From Orbicella franksi (taxonomy: Eukaryota): DNA of 64,000 nucleotides. A model generated the notes under the pieces. The model did not search any database, was not told the origin of the DNA, and saw nothing but the letters and a program-made list of their open reading frames with translations. Positions 798-32,756 of the stretch are shown piece by piece; position 1 is the stretch's first letter; every line of letters begins with the position of its first letter. The stretch is taken from contig OZ116706.1 of NCBI GenBank assembly GCA_964199315.1, forward strand, positions 26,908,001 through 26,972,000, given 5' to 3'. The translations under genes and the position numbers were made by a program.

Positions 798-953
798 ATG
801 AACTTCATAATACACATATTCTGCCTCCTCGTGACGCTTGTCTGTGGTAAAGAATTGGAGGAACAATACCAAAGACTACCAGATGCCATAGCTGTTATTG
901 GGAGATCATTTGAATACTTTTTACCCCCTCGAGATGGCAAACAGCAATACAAG
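798..953 (+). CDS. DAG1-like: Dystroglycan-like 1, coding exon 1 (signal peptide, start of CADG domain)
   Basis: ATG at 798, MNFIIHIFCLLVTLVCG hydrophobic leader, LPDAIAVIGRSF, ends ...QQYK then GTATGT donor (phase 0). Confidence 0.85.
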
Positions 954-1517
954 GTATGTTGTGAATCAAAGCAGATGCATACTGTGAAATGAATATCACT
1001 TAATCCAGTGAAGTATCAACAATCAATATTGGTGTTAATTGAAAGAGGCGTTAATTACACGGATGGAAGACTTGCCCCTAAAAAAATCAATTAAAAAGAA
1101 CTGCATCTTCAAAATACCACATGCCTGGTCAGGTCTGATATTTGTTGAAAGTGCAAAAATACAGAATGTTTAAATGACTCAAAATATTACTTAATACCAC
1201 AAGCTTAGAGACAATGAAGTTGTGTTTGATAATTATTGCAAGGGTGGGGAAACTGGAATTTTAGGTGTTGTCATGCAACTTTTGATATAAAGCATTGACA
1301 GTGTCCACAATGCAACACTGTTTCAGAAACTAGAATGATTGTGGCAGCATTGATTACCAGCTACATTTTGAAGAAACAGAATGTTCGTTTAAAATGGGCA
1401 TTTACACATTCAAAAAAAGCCCCTTTGTAGTGACACTACTAAGAAGAAATTAAGCAGGCTTATTAAAAAGTGCAGGCAGCTTCAAAATAAGTAACAAGTC
1501 TTTCTTGTGTCTGTTAG

Positions 1518-2034
1518 GCCTTAGAACAAGGAAAAACAGTGCTACCTAAATGGCTGTCTTTTGATGCAACCAAGAACCAAATTTATGGGTTACCCTTAAA
1601 GCGAGACAAAGGGAGAGTTGATATTGAGGTCCATCTAAGGGACAGCGGATTGCACAAGGCTGTTTTCTCTATTGATGTTCAAGACTTACATACCATGTTG
1701 GAGAATAAATCGATGATGTCAAACGAGACAAAGGTTCCACCCTTTACAGAACCACTTTGCTCTCATGGAATGCCCGTCACTGTTGCCACTGTTCAGTTTG
1801 ATCTTCATGTGGGGGAGCTCTGTGGAGAAGAGAGAATGAAACTCATGAGACAACTGTCAGAATTCATCGACGTGAACATAGCAGACCTTCACATGTCAGC
1901 TGGAAAGGGACATAGCACAGCATTTGGGTTCAAAAATATTGTGATGATAACAGCAGGACCAGGAAATGTAGCTGATCCCAAGAAGCCTGGTATTGTAGTT
2001 TCCTGGAAAATTGGCTGTGAAATGGATATTGCAG
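1518..2034 (+). CDS. DAG1-like: Dystroglycan-like 1, coding exon 2 (alpha-DG N-terminal CADG + S6-like domain)
   Basis: Acceptor tttcttgtgtctgttAG; ALEQGKTVLPKWLSFD...QIYGLP...GPGN...VVSWKIGC; donor G/GTGTGT (phase 1). Confidence 0.88.
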
Positions 2035-2998
2035 GTGTGTAGTACAATAATAATGTTTTGAAACCAGTGAGACTTTGATTAGGGAGTTATGAGTTATGGT
2101 GGCCCCCCACCCCTCAGGGGATGGCAGAAAAATTGGGTGGGGTGTGCAGCCTGCTTCTAAAATCCTGTACCCTATTTAAGACCAAACTCTATGATTTTCC
2201 CTACTCTATTTGTGACCTGATCAAAAAGTCCCGCTATAACATATGGAGTACATTATTGAGTTGTAAAATTGTAAATAGGAAGTTTGAGGAGCACTCAAGA
2301 AGCTAGAAGTTGTCCTTGGCTGTGCCTTGGGTGACTCTTATGCTTCTTTTGTTCTCTCCAAACTTCTCATGTTCGTGAAAGCATGAATCAATGCTACTGT
2401 TAACTAGTAAATTACTAGGTCAGATCTGACACATTATGATGGAAGATAACTGGCAAGGGACTAACATGCAGGCTTTTAGCCAAACGGACATCCAGGCACC
2501 CTGTGGATGCGGCCACTTATTAAAGAAAATCATTTTATTTTTCATATTTTGCTTGCTAAATTGTTCATTTGAGCAGGCCCTATAGCACATTTTAGATGCC
2601 CACTTTTCAAATCTTGGCTAACAGCCTGCTAACATGTGCATGTAATCCAGAGGGACTGGCAATACTTATTGGTGTAAAAGTTGAGCAGAAGAAACGCTTA
2701 ATAATTATGCAGTCACGCTAGTGGAATCCATTCTTTGCTTGCCCAATGAACAAGTGAAGTGTTTTGGGAAAAATGTCTAAAGCTGATTAAGGTAAGGCTT
2801 GAAATAAATTTTTGGAGGCTACGTGAGAATGACTTTTGGAACAGTTCATCATAGTAACAGCTTGCCTAAAGGCCAAATTTGAAAAATGGTTTTCTTTGCA
2901 CTCTGACAAAGTTGTCAAAAGTGGCCAGCTGCTGATGGATATTGTGGCACTCTGCTGGGCAGTTCTGTTCTTCAATGCCAGGTTGTTCAAAACTCTAT

Positions 2999-3198
2999 TG
3001 TGTTGTTCCAGAAAATATCCATACCCCTCCCACAGAAGGTTTTTCAGCTTGAACCCCCACCCCACCCCTCCAGAAATTCCATTTTAGTGTCATACTTTCC
3101 TTCAAAAAATTGGGCTTTAGAATCCCCCCCTCCCCCCCCCCTCCCCCTTGGAATTTCCGTTAACCTTCCTTGGGGTTGGTATGGATATTTTAGTGGAC
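2999..3198. mobile_element. MITE-like interspersed repeat, family A, copy 1
   Basis: Terminal inverted repeats tgtgttgttccagaaaatatccatacccc ... ggggttggtatggatatttt; second copy at 8691..8893. Confidence 0.6.
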
Positions 3199-3759
3199 AA
3201 AAATTAATTCTTTGGTTAACTTTTTATCCTGGGTTAGCATTAACTGGCTTTCAAACAACCCGGCTCAGGTACTTGCATCACAAGCAGCAAATTTGCTGGC
3301 TACTTTCTGAAAACAGCTATCTAATTCAAAATTTTCTTTAAACCCTGTGAGCACCAGCACTAAAGAGGTACCAACTGGTTCCTCCAAACCCAATTTTGTT
3401 TAAAAAATTAATGATTGAGTTGTTAAGTGTTGGTTGCAAAATACTTGAAATTATAAACTTATTAAATGAGTGGGTGGGCAGAATGGGAAAACATTTAACT
3501 TCAGTTCATAACATACTGGCCAAGTCCAGAGAGGTCAGTGCAAACTGACCAAGAGCCAAATAGTTTCCTGTTTAGCCCAAGCTATCTCTGCCAGTTATTG
3601 CTGTATTGTGCAACAGACAACTTTTCCTGGTCCACCTCAGTCACCTTAGACCCTACACACATGTTAGTTTTTATATCTGTAGGATTGTGTTGGCAAGACC
3701 AAATGGTGGTGTAAAAAAGCAATGTACTTAAACCACGTATTGTTTTGTTTTTGTCATAG

Positions 3760-6700
3760 GAATAAAAATGGTCTCTCTTTTGAAGTCCAGTTCTGAGCAG
3801 GGAACATTTAAACAATTTCTTGAAGCCCCTGTTAGTGGGTGGCATATTGTAACTGGGCAGCCAAAACCTCATGAAAAAAGGGTACGTCGACAAGTAAGCA
3901 ATCTGTTTCCAACTCCAGTACTGACTGGCACGTCTCCAACACCTTTGGCCACAATGGCTCCACCATCATCTATTGCTCCCAGTATAACTGTCATGCTGGC
4001 TACTACAACAGGGAGTCCCCTTCCTGTTAACACTGTACCTGTCATTCGGAAGTCAATTGGCCAAATGACCTTCTTCACTGGAAGAGCACTTCGATATCAA
4101 ATCCCAGCTGATATGTTTTATGACCAACAGGATGGCAACACAAGAAATCTAAGGCTAGAGATGAGAACAGGTAGTCTTGGTCAACTTCCCTCCTGGATAA
4201 TGTTTGACTCACTGAATCAAGTAATTTATGGCCTGCCTTTCGGAAGTGACAGCATTGGATTGTACGAGTTTGTTCTCAGTGCCACTGACAATGGTGGAAA
4301 AACTGTATCTGACCGCTTTAAAGTACAAGTGTCCGACAGCCTAACCTCTTTCACTCACATGTTTACAATTTGCCTGAATTATGACTACAAAAAATTCATA
4401 AATGATGTTGGGATTCGACTTCAGCTAATGAGAAAAATTACCAACTACTATGGTTTGGACTTGTCTCAGTTACATCTTGCATCCTACACGTATGAACATG
4501 GTGCCATTTTCTTTGCATTCAAATTCGAGTTATCAGACCAGAACTGCAACAGTAAAAATTTGCAAAATCTCATAGATGGCTTTGGCAGAAATAATAGAGA
4601 ACTGAATCCAAACTTTCAGACATACCTCCTTCCAGAGTTTGACATACTGTATGGCTTTCATGAGGGAATTGAACTATGTACACCAACTGCTGCTGAGAAT
4701 TCCATACCTGAAGTAAACAAAAAAATTGGTCAACTGAGTGTGTCTTTGGGACAAGGAATGCACTTCATCATCCCATGGAACACATTCTATGACCCACAGG
4801 ACTTTTACACACGTAACTTGAAGCTTGAAATTAGAACAAAAAATGGTGAAGCTCTTTCTGCAACCTCGTGGATTGGTTTTAATTCTTCAGAGCAGGAAAT
4901 TTATGCCCAACCAAATGCTTCAAATTTAGTTGGACACCACAAGTTTCGCATAGTTGCTATTGACAGTGGAGGACTTGAAACTTTTACCAGTGTGAAGGTG
5001 CTTGTAGTGGATGACACAAACCGTTACAATCATGAGTTTTCAATCCTCCTTCGAGGCTATAGCTATGAAGACTTGGCAGGAAATACTAAAAACAGGGTGT
5101 TCTTATTGGAAGCAATTGCTAAATACTATCAGCTAAACTTAACTAGTGTACGCATCGCCAAGTATCTCGAAGGAGTATCTTTTCATTTTAGGTTTGATTC
5201 CATTCCATATGGGGAATGTGACAATCCACTCTTGAAAAGGATCATAGATGGCTTCTGGATTGATGATAAAAAAGAGGTCAATGAGTCATTTGTAACTGCC
5301 CTTAGAGAAGACAAAATAAGAATTTTGACTGGCTACTACTTTGGTATTGGACCTTGCGAAGGCATTACACCCAAGCTGGAGAGCAGCCCAGAAGATCAAC
5401 AACGTATTATCAAAAGAGAAGTGTCCCAGGGACAAGCAATACGCTTCCATGTTCCTTACGACACTTTCTACGACGAGTATGAATTTTATACACCTAACTT
5501 GAGGCTGAGCATTAGGACAATGGAGAATAAAGAACTTCCACTGTCCTCTTGGATTTTCCTTCACTCCAATCAGCAGGACATTTATGGTTTACCTTTGGAT
5601 ATCAGTACAGTTGGACGTAATGATTTTCGCCTTGTTGCAAGAAATAGACAAGGAAAGGAAGGATTTACTACTTTGACGATCACTGTCTTGGAAGAAAACG
5701 TAAATTATGAAAACAACTTCACCATCCGCATTGAAAACTACAATGCAATCAAGAGAGATGTTTTCCAGAGAGTGAAACTGATAGATAAAATAGCCAGTTA
5801 TTATGACTTGGAATACAACAACGTTAGGGTTTTGAGTCAAAACCCTGATACATTTACTTTTGGATTTGATACTGTTCCGGCTGGACCATGTGACGACCCA
5901 AATCTTTTAAAGGTGAAAAGTGGGTTCTGGAGCGACAGAAATATAAATCCAAAATTTGTGGCAGCACTTTCTCCAGATTTTAATGTAATTTCTGGTTATT
6001 ACCAACTTTGTGGAGAATATATGAACACTCCACCAGTAACCATCAACCCTACAAAGCGCCAAACTGTATTCGAAGGACAAGCAATGAAGTACCCTATTCC
6101 TAGAGAGACATTCTATGACAAGGAAGATGGGTACACCCACCAACTCAAGTTGTTCATGACAACGATGAAAGGAGAAAACCTGCTACCAACTTCATGGATT
6201 CTTCTTTTTGACTCTCCACAGCAGGAAATTATAAGTTTACCTATAGGCAACAACAAAATTGGCATGCACAGGTTTTACTTGACTGCCACTGACAAGGGAG
6301 GGTTTAGAGCTTCCGATGAAATTAAAGTGGAGGTGTTGGAAGATACTAATATCTATAACCACAAGTTTACTATTGTCATTGATGATGCTACAGTTGCAGA
6401 CAATGTGAATTCAAGAGTGATTTTTGTGGAGAAGCTTGCAACTTACTTTGGAGTGGACTTTCATGATGTTCGTGTCCGTAGCTATGGTCCAGATGTTCCA
6501 ACTGTCTTCCAGTTTGCCATCCCAAATCTAGCATGTGATGACCTACGGCTGTTGAAGTGGAAATCCAGCTTTATCATGAACAAAAAGTTAAATGAAAACT
6601 TCATTAATGCTCTTCGTCCCGAGTTCCTAGTCTCTTCTGGCTCGTTCGAAGGCCTGGACATTTGCCAAACTCCTGAACCACCAAATAATACACCTCCACA

Positions 6701-8228
6701 ATTGTACAATCACATTGATCGGCTGGATGTATTCCAGGGACAAGGGTTACGATTTCACATTCCTAATGACACATTTTACGACAAAGAAGACCTCTACACA
6801 CCAAACTTAAAGCTAGAAATGAGGACAATAGATGGAGACAAACTTCTCAGGACATCTTGGATACTCCTCAATTCTTCACACCAAGAAATTTATGGCTTGC
6901 CTTTTGATGTTAATAGAATTGGATTACACGAGTTTTTGATGGTGGCTGCTGACAAGGAAGGAAGTGAGGCCTATGATGCATTTGAAGTGAGTGTGTCGGA
7001 AGACAACATTCCTTACAGTCACAAGTTTAACATTCTGATTGACTATGACAATGCTACCTTCATGGACAATGTGGGAATCAGAGTGCTCCTGTTAGACAAG
7101 ATAGCCAGTTACTTTGGAGTAAACTTCACCAGCGTGCGTGTGGTCAGCTACACTCCTGGAATTCTATTTACATTCTATTTTGATTTTTTGCCATATGAGG
7201 AATGTTCTCATCCTACCTTGGCAAAGTTCATTGATGGCTTTTGGTTTGGCAATGATTTGAATCCACAGTTTGTAGTGGCACTTGCTCCAGATTTTAGGGT
7301 GGTATCTGGCTCTTATGAAATGCTTTCTCCATGCAAAGTTGTTGCACCGCCTGTTGCTGGTTTAGTTGCAGATAGGCCTGGTGGAATATGGTGGACTTAT
7401 GCAATTATACCTGCCATTGTACTTGCCATTGTTCTCCTTCTCATTGGGTGCTGTGTGCTAATCCTTATGGGATGTTGTCGAAAGCAGAAAATGACAGGGG
7501 CAGAGAAAACAACCTTCATCTACAAGCGAAAGCCAGTTGTCCTCCAGGAAGAGTACGAGATCAAGGAACAGCTATTGAAGCAGCCAATAGTCCTGCCAAA
7601 TGAAAAGCCCCCTGTGCCACCTGTGTACCCACGCAGCCCTGTTCTAGGTGGTGACAGAACACCACTCTTGATTGAGGAAGCGAAGTCTGTTCCCTACCAA
7701 GCACCGACTTTCATGTCTAGTAGACAAATGGCAAGTGGTGGTGGCAGTAGCAATGTTGCATTTGCTGGAGGCAATGGTGGTGGAGCTGGTGGTGGTGGTG
7801 GTGGTGGTGGTGGTGCTGGAGGTGCTGGAGGTGCTGGAGGTGGCGGCGGTGGTTTAGCTGGTGGCAGCAGTGCAGCTGGTGGCGGTGGTGCAGCTGGTGC
7901 TGGTGGTGCAGCTGGTGCTGGTGGAGGAGTTGGTTCTTTTAGTGGTGCTGGGGGTGGTGCCTTTGGTGGTGGAGCTGGAAGCGGTGGCGGCGGCAGTGGT
8001 GGCAGTGGTGGTGCAGTGGGCAGCGGTGGTGGTGTTGGTGGCACAGCTGGTGGTGGCGCTGGTGGTACTGCTGTCAGTTTTAGTATGGCTTCAGGTGGTG
8101 GTGGTGCTAGTTTTAAGCAGACTTCATATAGCTATAGTTACAGCAGCAGTGGGGGAAGTGTTTCTGGTGGAAGTCGCAAGGTAGCTTATTCTGGGTACAG
8201 GTTACCTCCAGCCTATGTGCCACCATAA
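3760..8228 (+). CDS. DAG1-like: Dystroglycan-like 1, coding exon 3 (furin site, 5 CADG+SEA modules, TM, Gly-rich tail, PPxY)
   Basis: Acceptor ttttgtttttgtcatAG, in phase with exon 2 (G/GA ATA AAA ATG); 1486-aa ORF with repeated TFYD.(E/Q)D motifs; TM IWWTYAIIPAIVLAIVLLLIGCCVLILMG; stop TAA at 8226. Confidence 0.93.
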
Positions 8229-8690
8229 ACTCATCATATTAATAAACTGAAGCACTCTCTTGACAGTTTAAGTGGCTTGCTGACTGAACTGAAGTTCAAG
8301 TATCAAGGGACAGTAATTTGTTAACAGTTTGTTGCCATCAATCTTCTATGGGAGCCTTTGAACCAGCCTCCTACAATTTACATTTTGCTCATTACGCCAA
8401 CTTGGAAGAAGATTAGATGACAAGCCCAAAGAGCATCTTCTATGTACATGTCCTGGCAGATGCAGTAACATGACCAGTTTTGTTAATTAATGTTTCCTAC
8501 TTGTTTTGTTTGATGTTGTTTTAGACCAAAGTAGAAGTCAGTAACAGTGGATATCTCCCAAGCGAGGTAGGAGCTAGGTGGATATCTTCTGCTCACCATC
8601 CCTGAGGAGAATAGTAGAGTTTTGGTATCTTGTTACTGGTGATCAGCTTTAGACAAAAAGTGCAGATTTGTATTGCCATATTTAGGCAAG

Positions 8691-8893
8691 GTGTTGTTCC
8701 AGAAAGTATCCATACCCCTTCCATGGAAGGTATTATTAGTTTAAACCCCCACTTCCTGGAAATTCAGGTTTAGCTTCATACTTTCCTCTAAAAATTTAGG
8801 CTTTTGACTCCCCCCCCCCCCCCCCCCCCCTCCTGCTTGGAATTTCTGCTAACCTTCCTTGGGGTGGGTATTGATATTTTATGGAACTATACA
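8691..8893. mobile_element. MITE-like interspersed repeat, family A, copy 2
   Basis: Same TIRs (gtgttgttccagaaagtatccatacccc ... ggggtgggtattgatattttatggaactataca) and C-run core as 2999..3198. Confidence 0.6.
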
Positions 8894-9147
8894 ATGTTAA
8901 AAGAACAAACTGTCGGTGCTGTTTGAAAACCAGAAGAATAATGTTCCTGTTCAATAGGAAATAAATCAGAGCACATAAAAACAGTTTGGTCATTTATGCA
9001 GACAATTATTATTTAAACTTGATGTAGAAAATCCTTCTTTTGATGTTGAGTATAAATTTGCTATTGTTAATCCTAAGTTTAAGGCTTGTATTGTTAGAAA
9101 TAAGGGTTAAAACGGCCCAATTAAGCATTTAAATTTGACTTACAGGT

Positions 9148-13739: not shown

Positions 13740-13772
<33 letters not shown>

Positions 13773-15297: not shown

Positions 15298-15377
15298 ATA
15301 ATAAACAATAGTAGCAAGACTTCAATTCATCGTTTTATTGCAATAAAACGATGAATTGAAGTCTTGCTACTATTGTT

Positions 15378-15383: not shown

Positions 15384-15430
<47 letters not shown>
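15381..15430. repeat. (TA)n microsatellite
   Basis: About 25 TA units seen directly. Confidence 0.95.
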
Positions 15431-15431
<1 letters not shown>

Positions 15432-18012
15432 TTTTTCTGTTGATGATTGTTTGTGTTGTTCTTTTTTTTGCTGTTAGTGTTTTTGATTCTGCTTCAACTG
15501 CTATTGTCGCGCGCGAAATCCCTTGTTCCCAGTGTATTCCAATATTTATCTTACGGTGTAATTAAAGTAATCATGGATACAGTGAAAATTCAAATGTACA
15601 AGCGTCGAACATTTGCAGCTGAAGTTTCCTTTTTGAAAATTGCTGTCACTCCGCTGTTTTTACCACCATTTGAAAATGAAGTGTTATCATTATCGACTGA
15701 AATTTCGAGAGTATTGCACACGCGCAGATAGCCTGCACCTGGTTTAATTCAATGTCGACTGCTAAGAACCACAGAAATGGACTTTAGCAGATTTCACTGC
15801 AGCGATAACCTTATCGATTCCAGTTAATAAGGTGAGACAGGCGATAACGTCAGATATCAGAATTGTTCATTTATCAGTTTCTCACGGTGACCCTTAGGTG
15901 GTCACGGACCGACAATCTGTTAGTGTAGATATATCGGTAATTGTTGGGTTGTTAATGAATTTTGGTCCATGCAGACGTTTGCAAGCTGCTCCAGTTGCAA
16001 CTGTCTTTGAAGCCGGTGGCTTTACACATGTAGCCTCTTTTCACTACGTGTCTGAATAAAACTGCATTTGCCTGTTCACAGCTGGTTTGATTTCTTATAT
16101 CCCAAATCTTTTCAGATCTTTTCAGAGTCAGACATGATTTGATTATCCTGTGTCTGTCCATTTTATTTAGCTTTATATATATGGTTTGTTTTAGCAGCAA
16201 AACAAAGCTGATTAACTATGAAACGAAGTTTATCCCGAACATCATATGTGCTGTAATGGCTTTTATTGCATTATTAATCACCCAAAGGATTTACTTTATT
16301 TTCGTCCCAAATAATTGAATTTGGCAATTGAGCTCAATTGATTTTACTCGAAGGACTTTAGGAATGCATTGTTCAGAAGCAATGTTTGCTTCTCTGTGTA
16401 TATATTTACTCGTTGTATTAAGTTTTCCTGCTTTACGGTTTGTGGCTGTGTGTTTTTTCTTTCTTCGAGGGAGGTAAAAAGATTAACATCGGTAATTTCT
16501 CAAGTCCTATACAGTGAATTAAATAGTCTCAGACGTTTTTTGATTTTGTAGGCAGTAAACCAGATCTTTCACAGTGTGTAAGAGCTATTAAAACTTTTAA
16601 AAACCCCGAAACCAAACTCTGAAAACAAACAACGACCTGACAAGCTCTAGTGTGCTAGACTACTCCCGACAACTCCAACAAAAATATCTCAAGATAAGAA
16701 TTGTCTCCCCCGGTGTCCAACCCTTCTTTCACTCGAGGACTCGAGCTGGCTGTCCTTTGTTAACAAGGTCAGAAAATTGTGTCTGTTTATAAATACACTA
16801 CAAGAATACTGCGCATAATTGATGTTATTTGTTAGAACAAAAGTCAGCGTTCATTAGTCAAGCCGTTTAGTTTTTGAAACTCAGTCAAGCAAGGAGTTTT
16901 CGTCCAGTGACTACTGAGCGAAGCCTTTCAGATGCACGCCAGCTATCGGGTAAAAAATGTGACATTTGATACTGAAAATCTTCCGTTTTCTTCCAAATTC
17001 CTTCTGTTTCTAAAGAAAACATAAATCTAATTTTAAAGGGATTAACTTAGCCTTAAAACGAATTCTTAGCCAGTCTTATCTATAACGGGAATCCCATCAC
17101 CCGGTTAGGTGAATATTTGGTGTTTTGAGCAAGAGAAGGCACTCCTGTGTGACCGGGGAAATTAAATAGCGCAGCTTTCGTCCATCGGCTGTCATCACAT
17201 CCAACGCAATTCGATACCATTTGGTGTAGGATTCCATCCATCTATTTCTTCTGTCATCGAAAGGTCAGATCTACAGGAGCGTGGCGACGCTGTAAAAGAT
17301 CGAGAGGGAAAACATATGATAGAAGTCGATTAAATCAAGCGTAACACTACCCGGTTATTCGAGAAATTAATTCGACTCTCATTGTTTGTAAACTTTGGAA
17401 GATTCCATGCTGTAGTTGAGTGTAAAGCTTGACGGGTGAGCGGAAAACGCGCGATTCTCCGGCTTTCACAAAACTTGGACAGCATCGGTGGGTTTTTTGA
17501 CTATTTTTGCAATCTTTCAGGTTGAATGAAACACCCATGGCTTTTCATTCGCGTGGAATGTGTTGTGGTTAAATCCAGCTACTTGGAATTTCTGTCTCCG
17601 TCAAAATGCACATAAACTAATCTCTGTACCTCACTACGGCTTCTTTTTGGGTTTTAAGGTGCAAATATTATTCTTGTGTGTTAATCTTGGTGCTTATTTA
17701 AGGCTCAGCTGGCAGAGTACTAGCCGAACAAAGAAACAGAGCCGCGAGGTATAAATATAAAAATTATAGAACAACCGTATGTCATCGATCGGCCCTTCAG
17801 AAGATGGGCGGATATTTGTTAATATTTACTCGTTAACCATTTCCTTTAGCAGCCGAGCCAAGCAAGCGATCGAGGAGTCATCGAGATTGCACGTATTCTT
17901 CTGAAATACAGGGTCTCACTGTAACCGACGCTGATTAATCTCTTTAACCCGTTCTACTTCACAGAGATACTGCGTTGTATAGAGGCTAGTCAGACTATCA
18001 AAGACCTTGGCC

Positions 18013-18192
18013 ATGAACTCAGCAGCGTTTCTTCTTGGTTTATTGCTAATTTCAGTAGCGCTCGCCGCTGGAGAAAACCAACAAAGCGACATTCTGCCGT
18101 CGAGTGAGAGAATCGACAGTGCCGTAGCAGTTGTTGGAAGGGCTTTTGTATATTCTCTGTCAAACCAGGCAGGGCATAAAGACGAATACAAG
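18013..18192 (+). CDS. DAG1: Dystroglycan paralogue 2, coding exon 1 (signal peptide)
   Basis: ATG at 18013, MNSAAFLLGLLLISVALA leader, SAVAVVGRAF, ...EYK then GTAAGT donor (phase 0); same position as in paralogue 1. Confidence 0.88.
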
Positions 18193-21408: not shown

Positions 21409-21928
21409 GTTGTTCAGAGAGGGCAAGCTTCGTTACCTCAATGGCTGTCTTACATCGAGGAGAAATCTGTGCTGCTAGGCGTGCCGTCATGGCGCGACCG
21501 AGGTGACATTGTCATCGATTTTCAATCAAAGGATGGAAATACGGAACATTCCCTGAACATCCAGGTAAAAGACATGCTTGACGAAGTGTCACAGCCTTCG
21601 CCACGCTCTAACAATACCAAGACTTCTTCTTATTCCAAACCAAAATGTCCCAAGGGGTTACCAGTGGCAGCTGCCTCTATCGTGCTGGACTATCATTTGG
21701 AGAAAGTTACGGGAGAGATGAGAGTCGAGATCATGAACAAAGTAGCTGACTTTGTTGACGTGGATGTGAAAAATCTTCACATGTTAGCGGGCAAGGGACA
21801 CAACACCGCTTTTGGGCTAAAAGATGTGATAACAGTCACAGCAGGGCCAGGCAATGTGGGGGATTCCAAGCAGCCTGGTGTAGTGGTTTCTTGGCAGATC
21901 GGCTGTGGAATTGACATACCAATTGCTG
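21409..21928 (+). CDS. DAG1: Dystroglycan paralogue 2, coding exon 2 (N-terminal CADG + S6-like domain)
   Basis: Acceptor ...cccaccAG; VVQRGQASLPQWLSY...LLGVP...GPGN...VVSWQIGC; donor G/GTGAGT (phase 1). Confidence 0.9.
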
Positions 21929-22452: not shown

Positions 22453-24437
22453 GAGTACGAATAGCTTCTTTCCTCAAATCCAGTACAGAGACGGGATCCT
22501 TTGGTCCAGTGCTTGGTCTTCCTGTGACTGAGTGGCACGTATCCATTGGTTACCCCAAACAGCCTCGACAGAGAGCCCACAGGCAGGTGGTTCAGGACAA
22601 AACTCCTAAAGTTGTCAAACGATCAACAAAACGAGACGTTCGAGCGATCCAAGCGACTCCAACACCGACCTTGACTGTGGCACCTCCCACGTCTGTTGTC
22701 GCTAGTGTCACGATAACTGTTACTAGAACAAGCTCGGTGGCTCCGACCTCGACTGTGGCACCGACTACAACTTCGGTGGCTCCAACGACCACCGAAGAAC
22801 CGACAACACCTACTACTACAAAGCCACCGACCACTACCGAAGAACCGACGACAACGGAGACACCAACCACTACGAAGCCACCGACCACGACTGAAAAACC
22901 GACTACTGCCGAAGAACCGACGACTACGAAGCCACCGACCACTACCGAAAAAACGACAACAACGAGGACACCGACTACTACAGAGCCACCGACCACGACA
23001 GAAAAACTGACTACTACCGAAGAGCCGACGACTACGAAGCCACCGACCACGACAGAAAAACCGACTACTACCAAACGACCGACCTCTACCGAGCCACCGA
23101 CCACAACCGAGAAGCCGACGACAACTGAAGAGCCTACCACGACTACAAAGCCGGTAGCCGCATCGGCAAAACCGACTACACCCGAACAGACGACGACAAC
23201 AGAAGCACCAACTACAGAAACGACGACCACAGATGAGATACTGATCACCACAGAAAGACCAACACCATCTGAGAAGCTCAGTACCAGAGAAGCACCCGCC
23301 ACAGAAAAACCTAATCCACAAGTCCTTAACCATATTGATCGTATAGATGTTTATCGCGGTCAAGCGCGTATGTACCACATACCCGTGGATACATTTTACG
23401 ATCACCAAGACTTCTACACACCTAATCTGACGCTGTCGCTGAAAACGAATCAGTGGAAGCCGTTGTCCGAGGTGCCTTGGATTAAATTCGATCCTGAAAA
23501 GCAAGTAATCTCTGTCTTTGCTGTCGACGAGGGAGCTATCGGAATTCACGAGTTTTTCCTCGTTGCTGCTGACAGTGATGGAGAAGAAGGCTATGACGCT
23601 TTTGAAGTGAACATCTTGAGTGATTCTTCTGTTTCTTACAATCATCGATTTAGCCTTAAACTTGACTATGATTATAAGACCTTCTCCAGCGACTTTAACG
23701 TCAGATTACAGCTGCTTTCCAAACTTGCGGAGTATTTTGAAGTGAACTCCAGTAGTGTGAGAATTGTCTCGTTCACTGAGGGCTCCGTGATCTCTAAGTT
23801 CCAGTTCGATTCCTCTACCGTCCCATTCGACGACTGCGATTTTCCACTCAGGGAAAAATTTGTCTCTGAGGATGTCGACGAAGATGGCGACAGTGTGAAT
23901 CCTGATCTTAAGAAAGCTCTTGAACCCGATTTTCCAGTCCAATCTGGTTCGTATGAAGGCCTTGGACCTTGTAAGGGTGGCGATGGAGTGGCGGTGACGA
24001 AACAGCGATCGGGTGTGTCGAAGACGTACATTATCATTCCAGTGGTGATCTTAGCAATTGTGTTATTGATCATCGGCGCTTGCCTGTTCGTTATCATACG
24101 CTCGCGACGCCAGCGAAAACTTTCGCTGGAAGATCAGAAACTTTTCGTGGATAAACGCAAACCGGCCGTGCTTCAGGAAGAATATGAAGTCAAAGAAAGG
24201 TTACTTAAACAGCCTCTTGTCCTGCCAAACGAGAAGCCACCCCTTTCCCCTCCGGTGCAGCCGCGAAGTCCGTCCTTAAAGCACTCAGGCAGCGACCCAC
24301 CTCCATCGGCCGGGTACCAGGCTCCCTCCTTCACTTCAAGCAGACAGCCAAGTATTCCAGGAACTCCCAGTAGCAACAGCCCTCGAAAGCCAGGATATTC
24401 AGGTTACCGGCTACCCCCGGCATATGTGCCCCCGTGA
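22453..24437 (+). CDS. DAG1: Dystroglycan paralogue 2, coding exon 3 (mucin, CADG, SEA, TM, PPxY tail)
   Basis: Acceptor tgttttctcAG in phase (G/GA GTA); 642-aa ORF continues to TGA; TM YIIIPVVILAIVLLIIGACLFVII; LVAADSDGEEGYDAFEV. Confidence 0.94.
22821..23144 (+). repeat. Coding minisatellite, 6 x 54 bp (18-aa unit KPPTTTEKPTTTEEPTTT) in the mucin domain
   Basis: Units start at 22821, 22875, 22929, 22983, 23037 and 23091. Confidence 0.9.
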
Positions 24438-24857
24438 GAAAAACAAAATACAGGAAAAGAAAAATAGTTGGTTCTACTGGACCTCGGACGATAAAGATTA
24501 AAAAACCGGAAAATATCCATGCCATCGAGGTATACGATGTAAACTGGACAAACTACCATAAAGATTTCGAGTAAAGAGCTGTAGCACTTTTCTGCGCTTT
24601 TGCCTTCTTACAATTTATTCAAAATTCTAGCCGAGTTTATTTGGCTTGTGATAAACGAGTTTGTGACATGCTTGGCGTGGATATGACAACACGAACTCCA
24701 AACAAGGTCAAAATAAGGCGGTCAGAATATCGGCTAAATACAAGGTAAATGTGATTTGTCCAGTACGTAATGCGAAACAAAGCGCGCGCTGGCTTCTTAC
24801 ATTATTAGTTAAATTTATAGTTATAGTGTATTCATCTAGACCTACACTAAAACACTG

Positions 24858-25216
24858 AGGCCCTTTCCACATAACGCCGGAGGAATTTAAAAGTGGAAGT
24901 TTCATTCTGAAAACGTATCAGATGTCTTCCGTCCACACTGCGCCGGAGGAATTTAAAAACGCAACAATCACCGGTCATTTTGGATTTGTGTTTGAGGAAA
25001 ACTCGGTCAGGGAAGTCACGTGATTATCGTGACGCCATCGTTTTCAAGAAGCTCCGTGTTCAAAATGTTTTCCGTCCACACGAGAACGAAAATTCCTTTG
25101 GTTTGCAGAGCGTTTTCAACAAGCTCCGTTTTCGCGACGAATTAGCGTGGACGGGAAGCCTAACCGTAGAAACTAAGCTGCGTTTTCAAATTGCTCTTGC
25201 GCAGTGTGGACGCTGA
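24858..25216. mobile_element. Non-autonomous DNA transposon (PIF/Harbinger-like MITE), family B, copy 1
   Basis: aggcc..tccaca ... gtgtggacg TIRs; ~360 bp; near-identical body to 28327..28683 and 53542..53898. Confidence 0.7.
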
Positions 25217-26096
25217 TTAAGACAAATGTTTCCATTTTTTATCGCAAGTGAAGAACAAGCGGTCTTGTTTTGGTTCAGCACGTCCTGGCAACTAACGAGC
25301 TAATATCCGCTTCATAAGCCTATCCCGCTTCAAAAGTAACATTCCTTCACGAAAACCTAGATCAAAACGAAAAAATCCGTCAGCCAGTTTAAAGAAGCTC
25401 AGTCACGGTATTTTGATTTATTTTGGGCACGCACAAAATTACCTTTGAATTGAAGGAAACTTGAAAATAATGGTTCACTAAGATAGAAAGACACCAAAGA
25501 GATAATAATAAGTAATAAAAGAACAAAGATGGTTGAGGATGGAGAAGATTAACACGGATTACAAACGACTAACCTAAAAAAAAAATTTTGCTTAACTTTT
25601 CGTGATGCGCAAACTGTGACGTACCTCCTTTAGGGATTTCCTTGTTAAGCGATAAGCAAGTTACAAAAAATTAAGTCGTGAATCAAATGACCCCAAAAGA
25701 TTTGCCTCGGATAATTTTGTCAAGAATGCGGTAAATAGGATAAAAATAGAGGATAAACGAAAAAAAAAGATACAGTTTTCATATTGAAATAGCGCATTTA
25801 AGGAGCATATTGATTTGTAAGAAAAATTTTTACGTATATCTTGAGATATCATATCGTTATCGACGCTGTTAATTTTTTTTTTTGCCAATTTTAACCATAC
25901 TTAATCAGAATATATGTATATCTTTACCAAGGTTATAATCTCTGTATTTGACTACTTCGTTAAAGGCTAAACAGATTAAAGATATATTTTTAACTGATAT
26001 GTTTGCCAAGTTTGTTAATCCTGCCAAAAACAATTATTAACCAGTGTGGCGACCTGTGTGTTGTCAACGGCACTGTACAGAACCAAAGACTCTGTT

Positions 26097-26381
26097 TAGG
26101 GCGGTTTTCAATTGACTGCCGTGAACCACTTTGGCCAATCACGAAAGACGCAGACAATCTAGTGAACCAATCAAAACTTAAAGCAAACACGTGTAGCCGA
26201 CGCAAAGCGCGGGAAAACGTCTGGCAAACGAGTCAAGCAAGTCAACAAGCTAGCAAGTCATGATTGGTTTTGGTTTAACTTCTCATTGGTTGAAAAGTGG
26301 CGTGAGTTTTTTAAACCGATCATTGGCGTAGAAATTCAAAACGAGTTCAAACGTAAACGTACTTAATTGAAACCCGCTCTA
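26097..26381. mobile_element. MITE-like repeat, family C, copy 1
   Basis: TIRs tagggcggttttcaattga ... aattgaaacccgctcta; inverted homologue at 40786..41243. Confidence 0.65.
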
Positions 26382-27337
26382 TAAACGCGGTTTAGACAGA
26401 GTCTTTGATGTTACCTTAAGCAGTTTATGTGTAAATGTAAAAAACAACATGCAAATGGGCCGTGCCTCTCTAACAATGGGGCGTTGGAGCCAAGGCCAAA
26501 TGCCTCGCTTTCCTGACTTTTAGTACTTTATTGAGTATTAGCTTAAACCACTGGCCGTCTTATTGGCAAACTAGCAATCTGATTGGCTTCAAACACAGAC
26601 GACGTTTATCGATCGATAGTCAGTCCTCATTTTCGCCTCTAGAAGGTTACAAATGTTCCGTGAGGAAAAGTTGAAGCCGATTAAGGGAGCGATTACGCTA
26701 TCCAATTGAACACTATGATAGACATTTCAATGTGCTTATGTCTTGAAACAACCGTTCAGTTCATGAAAAGTTGCCACACCCACCATGATTTCGTTCTCTC
26801 ATTGGCCAGTTCAATTAGGAAAGGGACATCATATCGACCGCCGAAATGCCATCATCGACTGAACAAAACGCAGATGAAACAAAACAGTGGAGTGACTTGT
26901 TTCAATGTAAAATTTTAGCCAGTTTAACTGCATGTCATCTTCAGTTGAACACGGCGGCTAAGCAAAAATGGGCACGTGGAGGATTTTTTCGGTGGTTATT
27001 CTAAAAATGCTTTGTTGATATCAATCCTCCCTACCACACACCAACTGGTTTGATGCTAAGTGTGCTATCTCGATATAGCAGATTTCCAGTCTCTAATGGA
27101 AATTACCACGTGATAATTAGAGGTCCTTTGCACGAGCCAGTCACATGATACAAAGAAAGAACAGTCACTCTTGACTGAAACGCATGACTGGTGTGGCTGC
27201 GCAAGCTTAGTAGCCAGTAGATATGGTCCTGCCCACGTGACTTATATCAACCAATGACTCGACACGAGAAAACATTCTTGGAATTAATTCTAACCCCCTA
27301 TAAGGTACATTCATTTCTTTCCTGAAGATCTAGTGGT

Positions 27338-27577
27338 CCGGGCTGTTCAAAGCCCGATGAAGCTAACCCAGGATTAGTGAGAATTTTGATTCCAGGTTTG
27401 TAACTTTTCGGTGAGGTTTTCTGTTTGTAATGTTTGTCCTTCAGTTTTGAGTCTGAACAATCTCAAACTACACAAAAAATCAGCAGTAAAAAATATTTTT
27501 ATACAATAAAAATTAACACTTCTGTTAACTCTTAAACCTGAGTTAGAGTAACCAAGCTTTCAAACAACACGGCCCTG
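27338..27577. mobile_element. MITE-like repeat
   Basis: TIRs ccgggctgttcaaag ... ctttcaaacaacacggccc; a partial copy lies near 3225..3265. Confidence 0.55.
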
Positions 27578-28326
27578 AGAAAAGGTCACAAAATTCTTGA
27601 ATAGCGGTAGACCTTTTTGTAATAAACACGTTGTTTTTCGGCCCAAGCTGAATATTATTATTTTTCTGCCGATTTTATGGGCTGAAATATTTTTATGAAT
27701 ATTCCTAGATTATAGCTTATGACATTTCTGTTAAAGGATGTATATTGGGGTATCAATTACGTGTTTGGTGCCTAGAAGGCGTTGAAGTCATTTAGGTGCC
27801 AGACTACAATTAAGCAATTAAGCCTGATATGAAACAAAAAATTTTTGCAGACATATTTATATTAGCATCGAACATACGGCTAGAGCTGTTTTTGTTGTTT
27901 TTTGGCTGTACATGTTTCGCCGTTTAAAGAAAAAAAACCATATAATTGAATAGTAATTACAAAGTTTCAACACAACTGAAACTATATTCTTTTCAAAATC
28001 TCAGTCTGAGGTTTATTCTTAAAATATGCTTAGAAAATTTTGCAAATTTCAGAGTGTACATCTAATTAGCTAAAAATAAAGATATAGGACAACTTTCACA
28101 ACGAAAAGTGTTTTATTTTATGTAAAGCATCGAAACAGTTTCTAATTCTAGAATAAATTTTACACATAGTTATCAAGGACGCTAGCAATATTGGTGGCAA
28201 ATATTGCTCACCTCTCAGGATTGAACGCGATTACTGTTTGACAAGTATTTCATATCTGGCTAACTTATTAAAACATTTTCATATTTCTTTAAAATTGACA
28301 AGATTATGTGTGTTTTGTTGATTTTT

Positions 28327-28683
28327 AGGCCCGTCCACTCTACGCAAGAGAAATTTGAAAACGGTGTTTTCACTCTGAAAATTAAAACGCATCAAATGTT
28401 TTCCGTTCACACAACACCGGAGAAATTTGTAAACGCAACAATCAACTGTCATTTTGGATTTGTGTTTAAGGAAAATTCGGGCAATCATAGATTGGTACCG
28501 TGACTTAATCGTTTACGAAAAGCTCCGTTTTCAAAATGTTCTCCGTCCACACTAAAACCCAAAGCTGGCGTTTTAAATTCCTCTGATTTGAAGAGCGTTT
28601 TCGAAAAGCTCCATTTTCGTGACGGATTACGTAGAAATATAGCTGCGATTTCAAATTTCTCAGGCGTAGTTTGGGCGGAGCCT
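28327..28683. mobile_element. PIF/Harbinger-like MITE, family B, copy 2
   Basis: Starts aggcccgtccac, ends gggcggagcct; same body (gaaaacggtgttttcactctgaaa...aagctccgttttc). Confidence 0.7.
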
Positions 28684-29909
28684 CATACGCGAGGACACTT
28701 TGTGATGCCAGTTACAAAGCGCGTGCCTGCATAAGCTAACCAAACGTTCAATCCGGGACTGATCTACTGAAGAGAAAAATTATTTAACTATCAATAGTGC
28801 CAGATCGTTTAGTGCAAAGTCAGTAAGCGGACAAATCATCCTTGTTGTTAGCGTGTTAGTATAAACTTACATTTATCATTCTTAGTTTAATAGAACAAGT
28901 TTGAAAATCAAATTTTCACCGTCAGAGGGGAAGAAATTCGTGTGCCAGTTTTTACTATTTAGTTTACATTGAGCTTAGTTTTACATTACCTTTACATAAC
29001 TGAATAAAATACTTTCAAAACATATTAAATGGTTAAAAATGGCACTTTTTGCCTCATAAAGTCTGCTGATTTTTTTTTTTGTCTGTTCTGTTATCCCATG
29101 TTTCTTCTTGTCTCAATTCTTTCAAGTTTACAAAAATCTTAATGTGCTACTCGTATTTCACAGAAGAATGAAAAATTCCTTAAATTATGTCAATTTCAGT
29201 GAATAAAAGCTCGCGAGAAAGTTCGTCTTTTGCCCTTGGCTCATTTTTGAATCACCTTGAGCAATGAATAATTTTATCCAAAGTAAAAACTAATCAGAAT
29301 TGCAAAAGAAGTCGAGAGCATCAAGCACAAATAATGAATTTTGCTAATTCGAACTCTGTTTACATTGTTTTAAATACAGTGGATTAACGTAAGTTCTAAC
29401 TACTGTAAAAAAAATCTCGCACCCAACAACTGCAAAGCTTTACTGAAACACCAAACACCAATCATGTCAACAGTGATTTAAGACTAACTTCACCACGGTC
29501 AGTGGCAAGGTGAAAGCGGTCATGCGCACTGAAAACTAGCTTGAACATTACTTTTTATTCTCTTGTTTACTCGATGTCTGAATGCAACGGAGTTTCCGCT
29601 CGGAAAATTTGCTTGCGAATGTTCAAATTGCGGCTATTTACAAACTTATCCTATAACTCTGTGTAAGTTGGTTTTGAAGCTTAATTATAAAGCCAGCTAG
29701 CGTTCCAGGGAGCATTTTCTTTAATCGCCTGGACATTACCTCCATTCGATCTCACGCCATTTTTGAGTTATTTGTCTCACTTTAGCCTCACCCCAAATGC
29801 TTTTTAGCTCACGAGAGATTTTGCACTCCTGTGTGTGAACAAGCACGGGAACAAAAGGCCTTTTCATCTAGAAAACTAACATGCAAAAATTAATTTTTGT
29901 TCTCTGTTA

Positions 29910-32756
29910 CTACGTTACTGGATTGTCGCTTTTGTTAAAACCTGAGAACCATTTTGATACATTTCCGTCTGGCTCCAGCAAGCTGGAAACTTTGGTTTTG
30001 ATCAGACCAACCATGGAATTGTCTCTTTCCATTTCTTGTTCTCGTTCGTCTTCTTCGTCATCATCGCCAAGTGTGAACACAACCGGTGGCTTCTCTCGGG
30101 TATCCCGCACGTCCCGCGAGTCCCGTGAAAATAGTGACCCGACATCTGGGAGAAGTGATTTTCCTAGACTCGCTTTACTTTTCCTCTGTGGTTTAGTTCC
30201 GTTTGGAATTCCTCCTTTACTCTTCCCACGCCTCAAATCTGGCACAGAGGTATTGAACGAAGTGAAGAAGTCGTCTTTCGCCCTCAACGAACTTTTCCAG
30301 CTATTCCTCCTCTCGTACTCTTCATCGTCCCAAAAGTCAAGCGTTGATTGGCTAGAGTAGCTGTTAGAGCCCAGTGCGCTGTAAGATGGTTTGCCGCGCG
30401 GCACACGGCCATTGGTGTACTGGTGCGGATTTGTGTAGTCTTGGTACTTGACCTCGATCAGAGGAAAACTTTCTATGCCCAGGCCACCCCGACTCTTGAC
30501 GGCCGAGACGTGATTCCAAATGGGCGTCGGCTTGGTGATACAGGGCGTGTGTTCATCATCAAAATCTGTGTCAAAAATCGATTTTTCGTGGTCGAACTTA
30601 TCTTCAAGGCCTTGCTCACTGGGTGCGTCAAACAGAGAATCAGGGTATTCGTCAAAGTCGCTCTCCCTAGAAGCTCTTCTATTACTCTTCCGCTCACCTT
30701 CGCCGAAATCATAATCATAGTTATCAAAGTGTTCTTGAGTTCTCTGATGATAATCAGAACTTATGCTATGGCGGCGGCCTTGGGAAAGAATTCTTTGTTG
30801 ATTATCAGAGGTGGAACTATGTCGGCGAGCTGGGATATACTGGGAGAGTTCATACTCTGACGCGTTACTTTGACGACAAATAGACTGCCGATGGACAGAA
30901 CCGTCGTCTCTCGTGAAATCGGGACGCCTTCGTGCGTCTTCGTAACGTTGTCGCTCACTTCGTACATCTTCGTATTCTCGAGGCTTGTAAATGTACGATT
31001 CGCTGTCATCAGAATCATCGAAGCTAGTTTTCTGACATTCTTCACTGTTCTCGGAATCTTTCTTGTCGTCGCTTTGTGCGCCTATGGATATGTTCAACAT
31101 AGATTTCCCAAAATCTCGTAGCTTATTTGAGAGAGAAGGCAGCGTTGTTTGCCCGGCTGATGTTGCCCCCACTGATTCGTTTGTTGGTGCAGAAATGTTA
31201 AGCATAGACTTTCCCAAATCTTTCAGTTTCGACGATAAACTTAGCCCAGAAGTTGAGCTTTCGCCGAAAGGTTTTGTTGCCTCTTGTCTCTCCGCAGTTT
31301 CCGCTTGGGAAATGTTCAACATTGACTTAACACCTTTCAGTTTTGTAGAAATGTTTCCTGCGATGTCGGAAAAATTCATGTCGAGTACCGCATTCAACAT
31401 GGACGGCTCTTCCTCGTCATTGTTCCTGTACGTGTAATAAACAGGAATGTCCAGGGGGGGTCGCTCTGTGTCGTCGTCATCATCATCCCACATGGCTCGG
31501 ACGTTGAACGATGCTCTGTCCTTTACGTTGAAAGGAAATTTGAACGGGTTATTTTGATTGGCAGAATTTTTGGTTCTGTCTGTTGCCGCCGCCGTTCCTT
31601 GCCTGGGGTGACCTCCTGTCGCGTTTGGTACTGTCAAATGTTTACTCGAGGGACTACCATTTGGAATATTCGCCTTTCCACCATGATCTTTCCCGTCCTC
31701 TCCTACGCCGTCTTCCTTAGAGTTATTAGATACTGACAGCATCGAGGGGTAACGGTTGTTAAAATGTACAGTGTGCGAAGTGAAGTCCATTGTACCGTCT
31801 TCGTTTCTTCGCCGCAGCGTTCGAGGTGTTCTCTTCTCTTGGACAACAGGGCGTTTAGTTTTGCTCCTTTTCACTAAACAAGAAATAGTAACCGGGATTC
31901 CTACCACAGACAGAAGAATAGCAACAGGTATAAAATGTGCCAACCAACCCCATTGAAAAGGAGGGTCTGGTCCGAACAATTTGGGATCGCAGGCTCCAAA
32001 GAATTTGAAGTGCGCACTTTCGATTGGAAATCTTGTAGTGAGCGCATTTTGAAACTTCTGCTCAATGACGTTTGTTTCTTCGTCAAGTATCCTCGATCTA
32101 AGCTTGCTGTAAGTGTCTTCATTACAAGGAGAATAAGGAATATTCGCAAATACAATAGTCATATTTCTCGATGCTTTGTTAAACGACTTGACCAAGATTT
32201 TGGCTGGTTTTTCGTTGAAACAATAGCGTGCCAACTTCGTGGCGAAGTCAATTCTCATTTCCACGTTTGTCATAAACCGCTGAAAATTTGTTCCTGTAGT
32301 TAAAATCAATTCATGGCTGTACTCAATGCCGTCCTCTTTCACACGAAGCTTGAAAATAATTTCATATTTCAAATCTCCTTTAACGCCGTCGACAACGACT
32401 TTATAAGTGAAGATGCCCACGTTGCCTGGAAGAGGAAAGCCATAAACCTCCCGACTTTTTGCATCAAACTGTACCCACGAGGTTTGAAGAATCTTTCCAT
32501 TGTTAGATGTCTTCATTGTAAAGCGAGGGTTTTTAATTTCACCGTTCACAGCATCAATAGTCTGTTGAGGGATAGGAATTCGGAATGCTCGCCCAACATG
32601 CGCCGTGCCTTGGAAAACGTTTGGCGTTAATTTTGTTGTGGCAAGAGTAGAACGACTTGGGCCGGTGGAACTGGAGCTAACGGAAGATGGCTTCTCGGTT
32701 GAGTTTATGGACACCAGCGAAAAAAACACCTTGAGAACCGTAAGTGCTTTTGACAT
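29910..32756 (-). CDS. Divergent dystroglycan-module membrane protein (signal, CADG, SEA-like, TM, ~650-aa cytoplasmic tail), 948 aa, single coding exon
   Basis: Uninterrupted 948-aa ORF with an in-frame stop just upstream; hydrophobic N-terminus; SWVQFDAKSREVYGFP..VG (human DAG1 SWVQFNSNSQLMYGLP..VG); Cys pair PC...GAC; TM at ~31872..31946. Confidence 0.85.
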   Translation of the reverse strand: MSKALTVLKVFFSLVSINSTEKPSSVSSSSTGPSRSTLATTKLTPNVFQGTAHVGRAFRIPIPQQTIDAVNGEIKNPRFTMKTSNNGKILQTSWVQFDAKSREVYGFPLPGNVGIFTYKVVVDGVKGDLKYEIIFKLRVKEDGIEYSHELILTTGTNFQRFMTNVEMRIDFATKLARYCFNEKPAKILVKSFNKASRNMTIVFANIPYSPCNEDTYSKLRSRILDEETNVIEQKFQNALTTRFPIESAHFKFFGACDPKLFGPDPPFQWGWLAHFIPVAILLSVVGIPVTISCLVKRSKTKRPVVQEKRTPRTLRRRNEDGTMDFTSHTVHFNNRYPSMLSVSNNSKEDGVGEDGKDHGGKANIPNGSPSSKHLTVPNATGGHPRQGTAAATDRTKNSANQNNPFKFPFNVKDRASFNVRAMWDDDDDDTERPPLDIPVYYTYRNNDEEEPSMLNAVLDMNFSDIAGNISTKLKGVKSMLNISQAETAERQEATKPFGESSTSGLSLSSKLKDLGKSMLNISAPTNESVGATSAGQTTLPSLSNKLRDFGKSMLNISIGAQSDDKKDSENSEECQKTSFDDSDDSESYIYKPREYEDVRSERQRYEDARRRPDFTRDDGSVHRQSICRQSNASEYELSQYIPARRHSSTSDNQQRILSQGRRHSISSDYHQRTQEHFDNYDYDFGEGERKSNRRASRESDFDEYPDSLFDAPSEQGLEDKFDHEKSIFDTDFDDEHTPCITKPTPIWNHVSAVKSRGGLGIESFPLIEVKYQDYTNPHQYTNGRVPRGKPSYSALGSNSYSSQSTLDFWDDEEYERRNSWKSSLRAKDDFFTSFNTSVPDLRRGKSKGGIPNGTKPQRKSKASLGKSLLPDVGSLFSRDSRDVRDTREKPPVVFTLGDDDEEDEREQEMERDNSMVGLIKTKVSSLLEPDGNVSKWFSGFNKSDNPVT

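Follow-up and report, generated by a model that had tools for sequence, protein, structure and literature searches.

A cluster of three dystroglycan-family genes in the coral Orbicella franksi is probably an old cnidarian locus

The published account of dystroglycan (DG) evolution rests on one cnidarian DG with a short mucin, which in Nematostella has no cleavage site. This Nematostella vectensis protein carries six IG2_MAT_NU modules (Adams & Brancaccio 2015, PMC4582122; Brancaccio & Adams 2017, PMC5216574), so that repeated-module DGs are already known from non-bilaterians, and cnidarian DG mucin regions have been stated to be much shorter than those of vertebrates (PMC8478517). Here we analyze a 64,000-nucleotide stretch of the coral Orbicella franksi (contig OZ116706.1; G000:C9:26908001-26972000, hereafter the window), part of the 497-Mb coral genome used for whole-genome searches, which contains three DG-family genes that we call par1, par2 and par3. 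All three encode a single transmembrane (TM) segment preceded directly by one or more IG2 plus SEA-like modules, and the DG cleavage site, mucin, module number and dystrophin-binding motif all vary among them. From the sequence comparisons below we consider it likely, with a probability of roughly three in four, that this is an old cnidarian dystroglycan-family locus and not a recent local invention, arranged in corals as par1, par2 and an opposite-strand par3.

The Pfam DAG1 signature falls on three large open reading frames (ORFs) of the window, those of par1, par2 and par3 (Table 1). A first-pass annotation, made from the letters of the window, had called three DG-module genes here, and ORFs, Pfam and our module hidden Markov model (HMM) agree with it. 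Modules were counted with this HMM as full CADG+SEA units (equivalent to Ig+SEA, or IG2_MAT_NU), and the splice models of par1 and par2 were built by homology guidance with canonical GT/AG sites. Proteins of the window match Orbicella faveolata entries at 99% identity; for par2 the entry is XP_020605093.1, ‘dystroglycan-like [Orbicella faveolata]’.

Each of the cluster genes has orthologues in many corals, among them the named species Oculina patagonica, Stylophora pistillata, Montipora foliosa and Acropora cervicornis. A 1.77-Mb ENA contig carries par1, par2 and par3 in the order, orientation and spacing seen in the window, and a contig of 0.56 Mb (556919 bp) from a more distant species, at ~41-57% identity, retains this arrangement of the trio. 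One Oculina chromosome carries G019679 and G019681 (locus tags) together with LOC144653420, the par3 orthologue. Montipora-like assemblies hold pairs of cluster genes on shared contigs, with transposable element insertions placing par2 more than 10 kb from par3. A two-gene version is present in sea anemones. Nematostella scaffold DS469637.1 contains a GT8 gene, a par3-like gene (P0081) and then a convergent 1904-aa DG with six modules in its large exon, tail-to-tail with P0081; this 1904-aa gene is the DG of Adams & Brancaccio. In Actinia tenebrosa, a six-module DG and a par3-like gene lie 11.6 kb apart. A par2-type gene was seen neither between the anemone DG and the par3-like gene nor among the homologue-search matches. 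The split between robust and complex corals is put at no less than 245 million years (PMC5730576). By our inference the three-gene set, present in both groups, goes back at least as far.

A comparable arrangement was observed in another cnidarian taxon, on four further ENA contigs (142378, 667441, 1331797 and 1941489 bp), where par3-like genes share a contig with a single-module Gly-rich DG (clusters P0144, P0021 and P0168); the 1941489-bp contig also holds a G|S-bearing DG without Gly insert. A similar cluster may thus exist beyond the corals and anemones named here.

The competing explanation is a recent tandem triplication in the lineage of this coral, followed by subfunctionalization. The three genes are indeed adjacent, par1 and par2 are alike in intron positions, phases and C-terminus, and a truly recent event exists nearby, namely the ~98% identical copy of par1 38.5 kb upstream. 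Yet 1:1 orthologues of all three genes occur in robust and complex corals, par3 and DG already adjoin in sea anemones, the anemone DG has the same introns and C-terminus, and par3 falls outside the DG clade. A recent triplication is thus highly improbable, and at genus or family level it is contradicted by the orthologues elsewhere. The lineage-specific origin proposed in the first-pass annotation did not survive the comparison across anthozoans, which placed the trio in other corals of both the robust and the complex group and par3–DG adjacency in Nematostella and Actinia.

The product of par1 comprises a signal peptide, IG1, an S6-like domain, a furin site (RVRR|Q), a linker, five modules, TM segment and cytoplasmic domain. 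Pfam identified a_DG1_N2 (PF18424) in exon 2 (1.1e-8) and He_PIG together with DAG1 (PF05454) in exon 3 (DAG1 2.9e-29). The five full CADG+SEA modules and the Gly-rich tail of the initial description were recovered, the latter as an insert of ~145 aa (51% Gly) in the cytoplasmic domain, and the C-terminus is GYRLPPAYVPP, which includes a PPxY motif (PPAYVPP). A mere ~55-aa Thr/Pro linker occupies the position of the mucin. The G|S site was found by motif check in none of modules 1-5, and par1 carries a one-residue deletion that removes its Ser. Transcription was scored as the fraction of sampled exon words present in RNA-seq contigs (Logan); 96-97% of the par1 exon words are present in each of 10 or more RNA-seq runs, which come from several studies and include polyA libraries.

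par2 follows the layout IG1, S6, basic sites followed by IQATPTPT, mucin, one module, TM segment and cytoplasmic domain, with a_DG1_N2 in exon 2 (5.4e-11) and DAG1 (7.1e-20) recognized by Pfam. Its mucin is 216 aa long and consists of 44% Thr and 17% Pro. Alone among the three genes, par2 keeps the G|S site in its single module (FTEG|SVIS), and its cytoplasmic tail is short and conventional with the C-terminus of par1 (PPAYVPP). Its description as nearly canonical is apt as far as the full DG plan, the G|S site and the mucin are concerned; it is, however, a distant DG and not par2 that groups with bilaterian sequences (99/91, see below). Two introns interrupt both par1 and par2 at matching positions and phases (exon 1 of 156 and 180 nt, phase 0; exon 2 of 517 and 520 nt, phase 1), and spliced full-length transcripts of par1 and par2 orthologues are present as Logan contigs (P0103, P0016). 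In Montipora the par2 orthologue P0045 (Montipora foliosa XP_068701737.1) has two near-identical modules at residues 529-740 and 761-972, the result of a very recent internal duplication.

In par3, the Pfam DAG1 match (E 2.4e-6) scores 27.6 bits against a cut-off of 23.3, and the module HMM finds one CADG+SEA-like module without G|S. Pfam found no alpha-DG N-terminal domain, there being ~45 residues ahead of the module, and the place of the mucin is taken by a Ser/Thr linker of ~25 aa; PPxY and a basic cleavage site are absent. The TM segment bears the motif WGWLxH...VVGIPVxIS. Behind it lies a low-complexity tail of ~650 aa with conserved short motifs, including HTVHFNNRYPSMLS, YTNPHQY and SKWFSGF, and three repeats of KL+xxGKSMLNI at 472, 510 and 545. 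Nothing in Pfam matched this tail at E<=1, a feature search of the ESM Atlas gave no usable match, and in the all-against-all representative search it matched solely anthozoan par3 orthologues. The minus-strand ORF, Pfam and the Atlas thereby bear out an inverted gene with one module and a huge novel tail, devoid of alpha-DG N-terminus and mucin, as the first-pass annotation had it. The N-terminus of par3 is a conserved hydrophobic helix. Residues 1-20 (window 32697-32756, minus strand; MSKALxVLKLFFSLVSINST) are near-invariant from corals to Actinia and the distant lineage P0084, an unusually high conservation for a signal peptide.

The AlphaFold2 model of par3, built from 21 orthologues, reached a predicted local distance difference test (pLDDT) value of 78 and consists of an Ig sandwich (46-140), an alpha/beta SEA-like domain (148-252) and the TM helix. 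Its top match in the PDB (Foldseek) is 8yt8_O, a chain of the dystrophin-glycoprotein complex (E 2.8e-17, TM-score 0.62), and it also matches 8uf4, the DG juxtamembrane proteolytic domain. The top Swiss-Prot matches are mammalian DAG1 at residues ~465-778 (E 1e-17 to 5e-19, TM-score 0.62). More than 30 intact orthologues are conserved over their full length, with identities of 45-99% in corals and 35-37% in Nematostella and Actinia. For par3, the fraction of words present is 0.2-0.7 in RNA runs drawn from four or more studies, and contigs from a polyA run span the ORF and 3′ untranslated region with no splice joint, although one of the contig runs may contain DNA. RNA-seq contigs thus support both the par1 and the par3 models, and all three genes are transcribed.

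These data also bear on two other identities for par3, a coral alpha/epsilon-sarcoglycan or a decaying pseudogene copy of DG. Alpha/epsilon-sarcoglycans share the plan of a cadherin-like plus SEA-like ectodomain and are the second-best fold match of the par3 model (E 1e-10, TM-score 0.35), and the par3 DAG1 score barely exceeds the Pfam cut-off. However, Sarcoglycan_2 (PF05510) gives no match to par3 at a threshold as loose as E 1, a Sarcoglycan_2 locus distinct from par3 lies at 16.66 Mb of contig C10, and the DG fold match is better by 7-8 orders of magnitude in E-value (TM-score 0.62 versus 0.35). A pseudogene is at odds with an intact 948-codon ORF that is transcribed and that more than 30 taxa conserve from end to end. 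Both identities are extremely unlikely and were rejected on profile, fold, the separate sarcoglycan locus and the intact transcribed ORF. Instead, profile and predicted fold indicate that par3 is a real DG relative, and the trees below place it in an old DG-like family.

Table 1 Features of the dystroglycan-family locus and related loci in the same genome. Positions are those of the window unless a contig is given.
Feature	Position	Strand	Description
par1	exons 798-953, 1518-2034, 3760-8228	+	1713 aa; GT/AG splice model
par2	exons 18013-18192, 21409-21928, 22453-24437	+	894 aa; homology-guided model
par3	29910-32756	-	single unspliced ORF, 948 aa, type I membrane protein
Glycogenin-like GT8 glycosyltransferase ORF	38590-39666	+	358 aa; Pfam Glyco_transf_8 3.3e-14; PDB glycogenin-1 6e-17
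Wnt gene	exons 60083-60403, 60724-61002	+	two exons; Pfam wnt 2e-18, 2.4e-30
Upstream par1 copy	~C9:26870234-26879700		~38.5 kb upstream of par1; ~98% identical to par1
Distant DG (L015, L018)	~C9:13941298-13952000	-	~13 Mb from window
Alpha/epsilon-sarcoglycan-type exon (L021)	G000:C10:16657617-16657775	-	Pfam Sarcoglycan_2, 33.2 bits vs cut-off 24

To place the genes we used a careful, unrooted IQ-TREE analysis of 88 modules and a second, quick tree of 103 modules; support is given as ultrafast bootstrap/Shimodaira–Hasegawa-like approximate likelihood ratio test (SH-aLRT). In the 88-module tree the par3 family forms a clade (98/99) with members from corals, Actinia, Nematostella and three further lineages. 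All DG modules, those of bilaterians included, form a clade (100/95) that excludes par3, and the quick tree agrees. Within DG, the cluster-type cnidarian modules (par1, par2, anemone DG, u105, u021 and u168) make up a cnidarian-only group (99/92), and bilaterian DGs group with the distant coral DG at C9:13.94 Mb (99/91). Neither par1 nor par2 grouped with bilaterian DG modules in the 88-module tree, and par3 stood outside all DGs. With its family placed beyond the DG clade, par3 does not appear to be a trimmed copy of its neighbors. The assignment of par3 to the DG modules held in terms of fold, which matches DAG1 465-778, and failed in terms of the tree, which places its family outside all DG modules. 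Taken together, Pfam, fold and phylogeny make all three genes true members of the DG family.

The origin of par1 and par2 is harder to date. The shared introns and the GYRLPPAYVPP end, observed as the first-pass annotation had stated, were taken there as support for tandem duplication. The anemone DG too has these intron positions and this end; the shared features therefore carry no dating information, lend no support to a recent duplication and are ancestral. Cluster-type tails all terminate in YSGYRLPPAYVPP. G|S is kept in par2, the distant DG and all bilaterian DGs and lost in par1, the anemone DG, u105 and u021, and the Gly-rich insert is confined to this G|S-lacking group of four.

Two histories fit these patterns roughly equally. 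Tentatively, and at somewhat below even odds, a tandem duplication on the stem of the stony corals, later than the anemone split, gave rise to par1 and par2. Their ancestor would then have been multi-module, Gly-rich and anemone-like, and par2 would have shed the Gly insert along with its inner modules while retaining or re-acquiring G|S. Such a duplication is in accordance with the clustering of all scleractinian DG modules, par2 included, without anemone modules (93/80 in the careful tree; SH-aLRT 97 in the quick tree), with a C-terminal tree that weakly joins coral par1 and par2 (63/89), and with the lack of a par2-like gene beside the anemone DG or among the homologue-search matches. If the tree is taken at face value, modules expanded separately in corals and anemones; inner modules show no 1:1 pairing between the two in the trees. 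The deletion of the G|S Ser and the Gly-rich insert, on the other hand, unite par1, the anemone DG, u105 and u021 against par2, which would need to regain G|S and drop the insert. The approximately unbiased (AU) test rejects neither par1 with the anemone DG (p 0.11) nor par2 with the anemone DG (p 0.34), and gene conversion between neighbors could mimic a coral-only clade. The second history, which is about as probable, places the split before the coral–anemone divergence, with anemones having lost par2 and gene conversion between neighboring genes blurring the sequence trees.

Several points weigh against the reading of an old cnidarian locus that includes a distinct par3 family. The position of par3 outside the DG clade could partly reflect a long-branch effect or rate acceleration, the tree being unrooted. 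In complex corals, linkage means presence on a shared contig, and par2 and par3 are >10 kb apart there. The term ‘Scleractinia-wide’ would rest on Orbicella, Oculina, Stylophora, Montipora and Acropora plus identity levels. Raw reads of two RNA-seq runs gave no alignment on par3 or upstream of it, and the 5′ end of par3 is provisional. Moreover, cleavage, glycosylation and the binding of laminin and dystrophin are read from motifs in par1, par2 and par3.

Beyond the window, whole-genome searches revealed two or more additional DG loci on this chromosome. The first is the upstream copy of par1, whose exon 3 ORF has 2154 aa and eight modules, the m1-m3 triplet being repeated as a 2007-bp in-frame tandem at 99.45% identity. 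This copy belongs to a tandem segmental duplication spanning 38 kb or more, with 97.5-98.5% identity and no Ns (C9:26848001-26886402 versus C9:26894201 through window position 15396), and could represent either a real event of very recent date or a retained haplotype. The second, the distant DG, has an IG1/S6 N-terminus, a furin site with a TPTP motif behind it (RRRVRR|AAGGIGFTPTPTP), a Ser/Thr mucin that extends beyond 1500 aa over several ORFs, one module with KFSPG|SVIMTWTND, and a tail with YEPPPPFY and PPAY. SVIMTWTND and YEPPPPFY look closer to human DAG1 than do the corresponding par2 motifs, and the distant DG may be the true DAG1 orthologue of corals. Among wider relatives, the par1-type proteins P0096, P0091 and P0105 have 6 or 7 modules. 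Among the relatives returned by the representative search are also proteins in which the module HMM counts 14-20 DG modules, such as P0146 with its 5993 aa. DG module number is highly labile.

A GT8 gene accompanies the par3-type gene within ~6 kb in the coral, Actinia and Nematostella, in varying orientation; in relatives it was located at 17145-18185 (L001) and 3761-4669 (L002). The window ORF has no obvious signal peptide or TM segment and is not a DG gene. Farther downstream, the window contains a Wnt gene.

For the cluster, what we observed comprises gene structures and their domains and motifs, the fold, transcription, and conservation along with synteny; the following account of ligand binding, cleavage, dystrophin binding and any par3 role draws on motifs and on analogy with vertebrate DG. 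par2 would be a conventional alpha/beta dystroglycan that matures like vertebrate DG. Its predicted alpha subunit, with a furin-type site, a TPTP O-mannosylation-type motif and a mucin that could bear matrix-binding glycan, would bind LG-domain matrix proteins; 12 of the 13 enzymes of the laminin-binding glycan (matriglycan) pathway have been reported in Cnidaria (PMC8478517). Autoproteolysis at G|S in the SEA-like domain would leave alpha non-covalently attached to the beta subunit, whose PPxY tail would recruit dystrophin via its WW domain. par1 would represent an uncleavable form of longer reach, with the N-terminal domain atop a stalk of five Ig+SEA modules. As the Ser of G|S is deleted, self-cleavage is not expected, and a flexible Gly-rich spacer would precede the same dystrophin-binding PPxY end. 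par3 keeps the membrane-proximal DG ectodomain and its own conserved TM helix, and most likely resides in the same membrane neighborhood. Since it has no N-terminal domain, mucin or PPxY, yet conserved TM and tail motifs, par3 probably couples a DG-type ectodomain to intracellular partners other than dystrophin. Given that cleavage site, mucin, module number and dystrophin motif differ, a division of labor among the three proteins is plausible; the attachment to mesoglea or skeleton proposed in the first-pass annotation is conjectural.

In our literature search, neither the cluster nor the par2 type, the par3 family or a giant-mucin DG turned up in any paper, mentions of dystroglycan in stony-coral papers were incidental, and public annotation lists the coral genes as ‘dystroglycan-like’, ‘dystroglycan 1-like’ or ‘uncharacterized protein’. 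The suggestion that the cluster is the new element stands insofar as no describing paper was found; the cluster itself is old and partly present in anemones. Beyond the par1 type, corals encode two further forms, the cleavable, mucin-rich par2 and, elsewhere on the chromosome, a DG that is more bilaterian-like and has a very large mucin. The published six-module DG is therefore one branch of the family, which changes the choice of gene for functional work on the cnidarian laminin–DG–dystrophin axis. It is possible, at somewhat less than an even chance, that several distinct DG-family receptors were ancestral in cnidarians, that is, a bilaterian-type giant-mucin form, a cluster type (cleavable or uncleavable) and a par3 type that split off before cnidarian and bilaterian DGs diverged. 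We hold with similar caution that the cluster-type lineage expanded its Ig+SEA modules repeatedly and split into a cleavable par2 and an uncleavable, Gly-rich par1. Equally provisional is the notion that par3, with a dystrophin-independent tail and kin in Hydra and jellyfish, has stayed beside DG for hundreds of millions of years. The family offers natural variants for testing cleavage, stalk length and tail spacing, and par3 provides a conserved, expressed DG-like protein without a dystrophin-binding motif.

Overall, each gene of the cluster resembles a known system in part. par1 is the counterpart of the published six-module Nematostella DG, with which it shares tandem IG2_MAT_NU modules in one large exon, a short mucin, the lack of an alpha/beta maturation site, the Gly-rich cytoplasmic insertion, the IG1 intron, the S6 mini-intron and an identical AYSGYRLPPAYVPP end. 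It differs in having five modules instead of six, and in corals it is one of several DG genes, whereas cnidarians have been treated as having one DG with a short mucin (PMC4582122, PMC5216574). par2 resembles vertebrate DAG1 in its succession of IG1, S6, basic site, TPTP (IQATPTPT), mucin, IG2, SEA with G|S, TM segment and PPxYVPP. In the tree, par2 nevertheless belongs to the cnidarian-only clade (99/92), and it is the distant DG that joins the bilaterians (99/91). par3 is like an alpha/epsilon-sarcoglycan in being a single-pass protein with a cadherin-like plus SEA-like ectodomain and no alpha-DG N-terminus or mucin; it is closer to DG in sequence and fold, and its tail measures 650 aa compared with ~100 aa. 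Medusozoan DG-like proteins (Hydra vulgaris LOC136088736, XP_065669333.1; Sanderia malayensis EP00794_P006799) share with par3 the combination of one module on the N-terminal side with a long unrelated tail. The medusozoan tails cannot be aligned to the par3 tail, and the two groups were neither joined nor separated with support (96/54, 83/22). The juxtamembrane/TM motif of the medusozoan proteins (of the type WLKxxxP...xxGIPVxISC) resembles that of par3 and not that of DG, a likeness which hints that the par3 type is cnidarian-wide.

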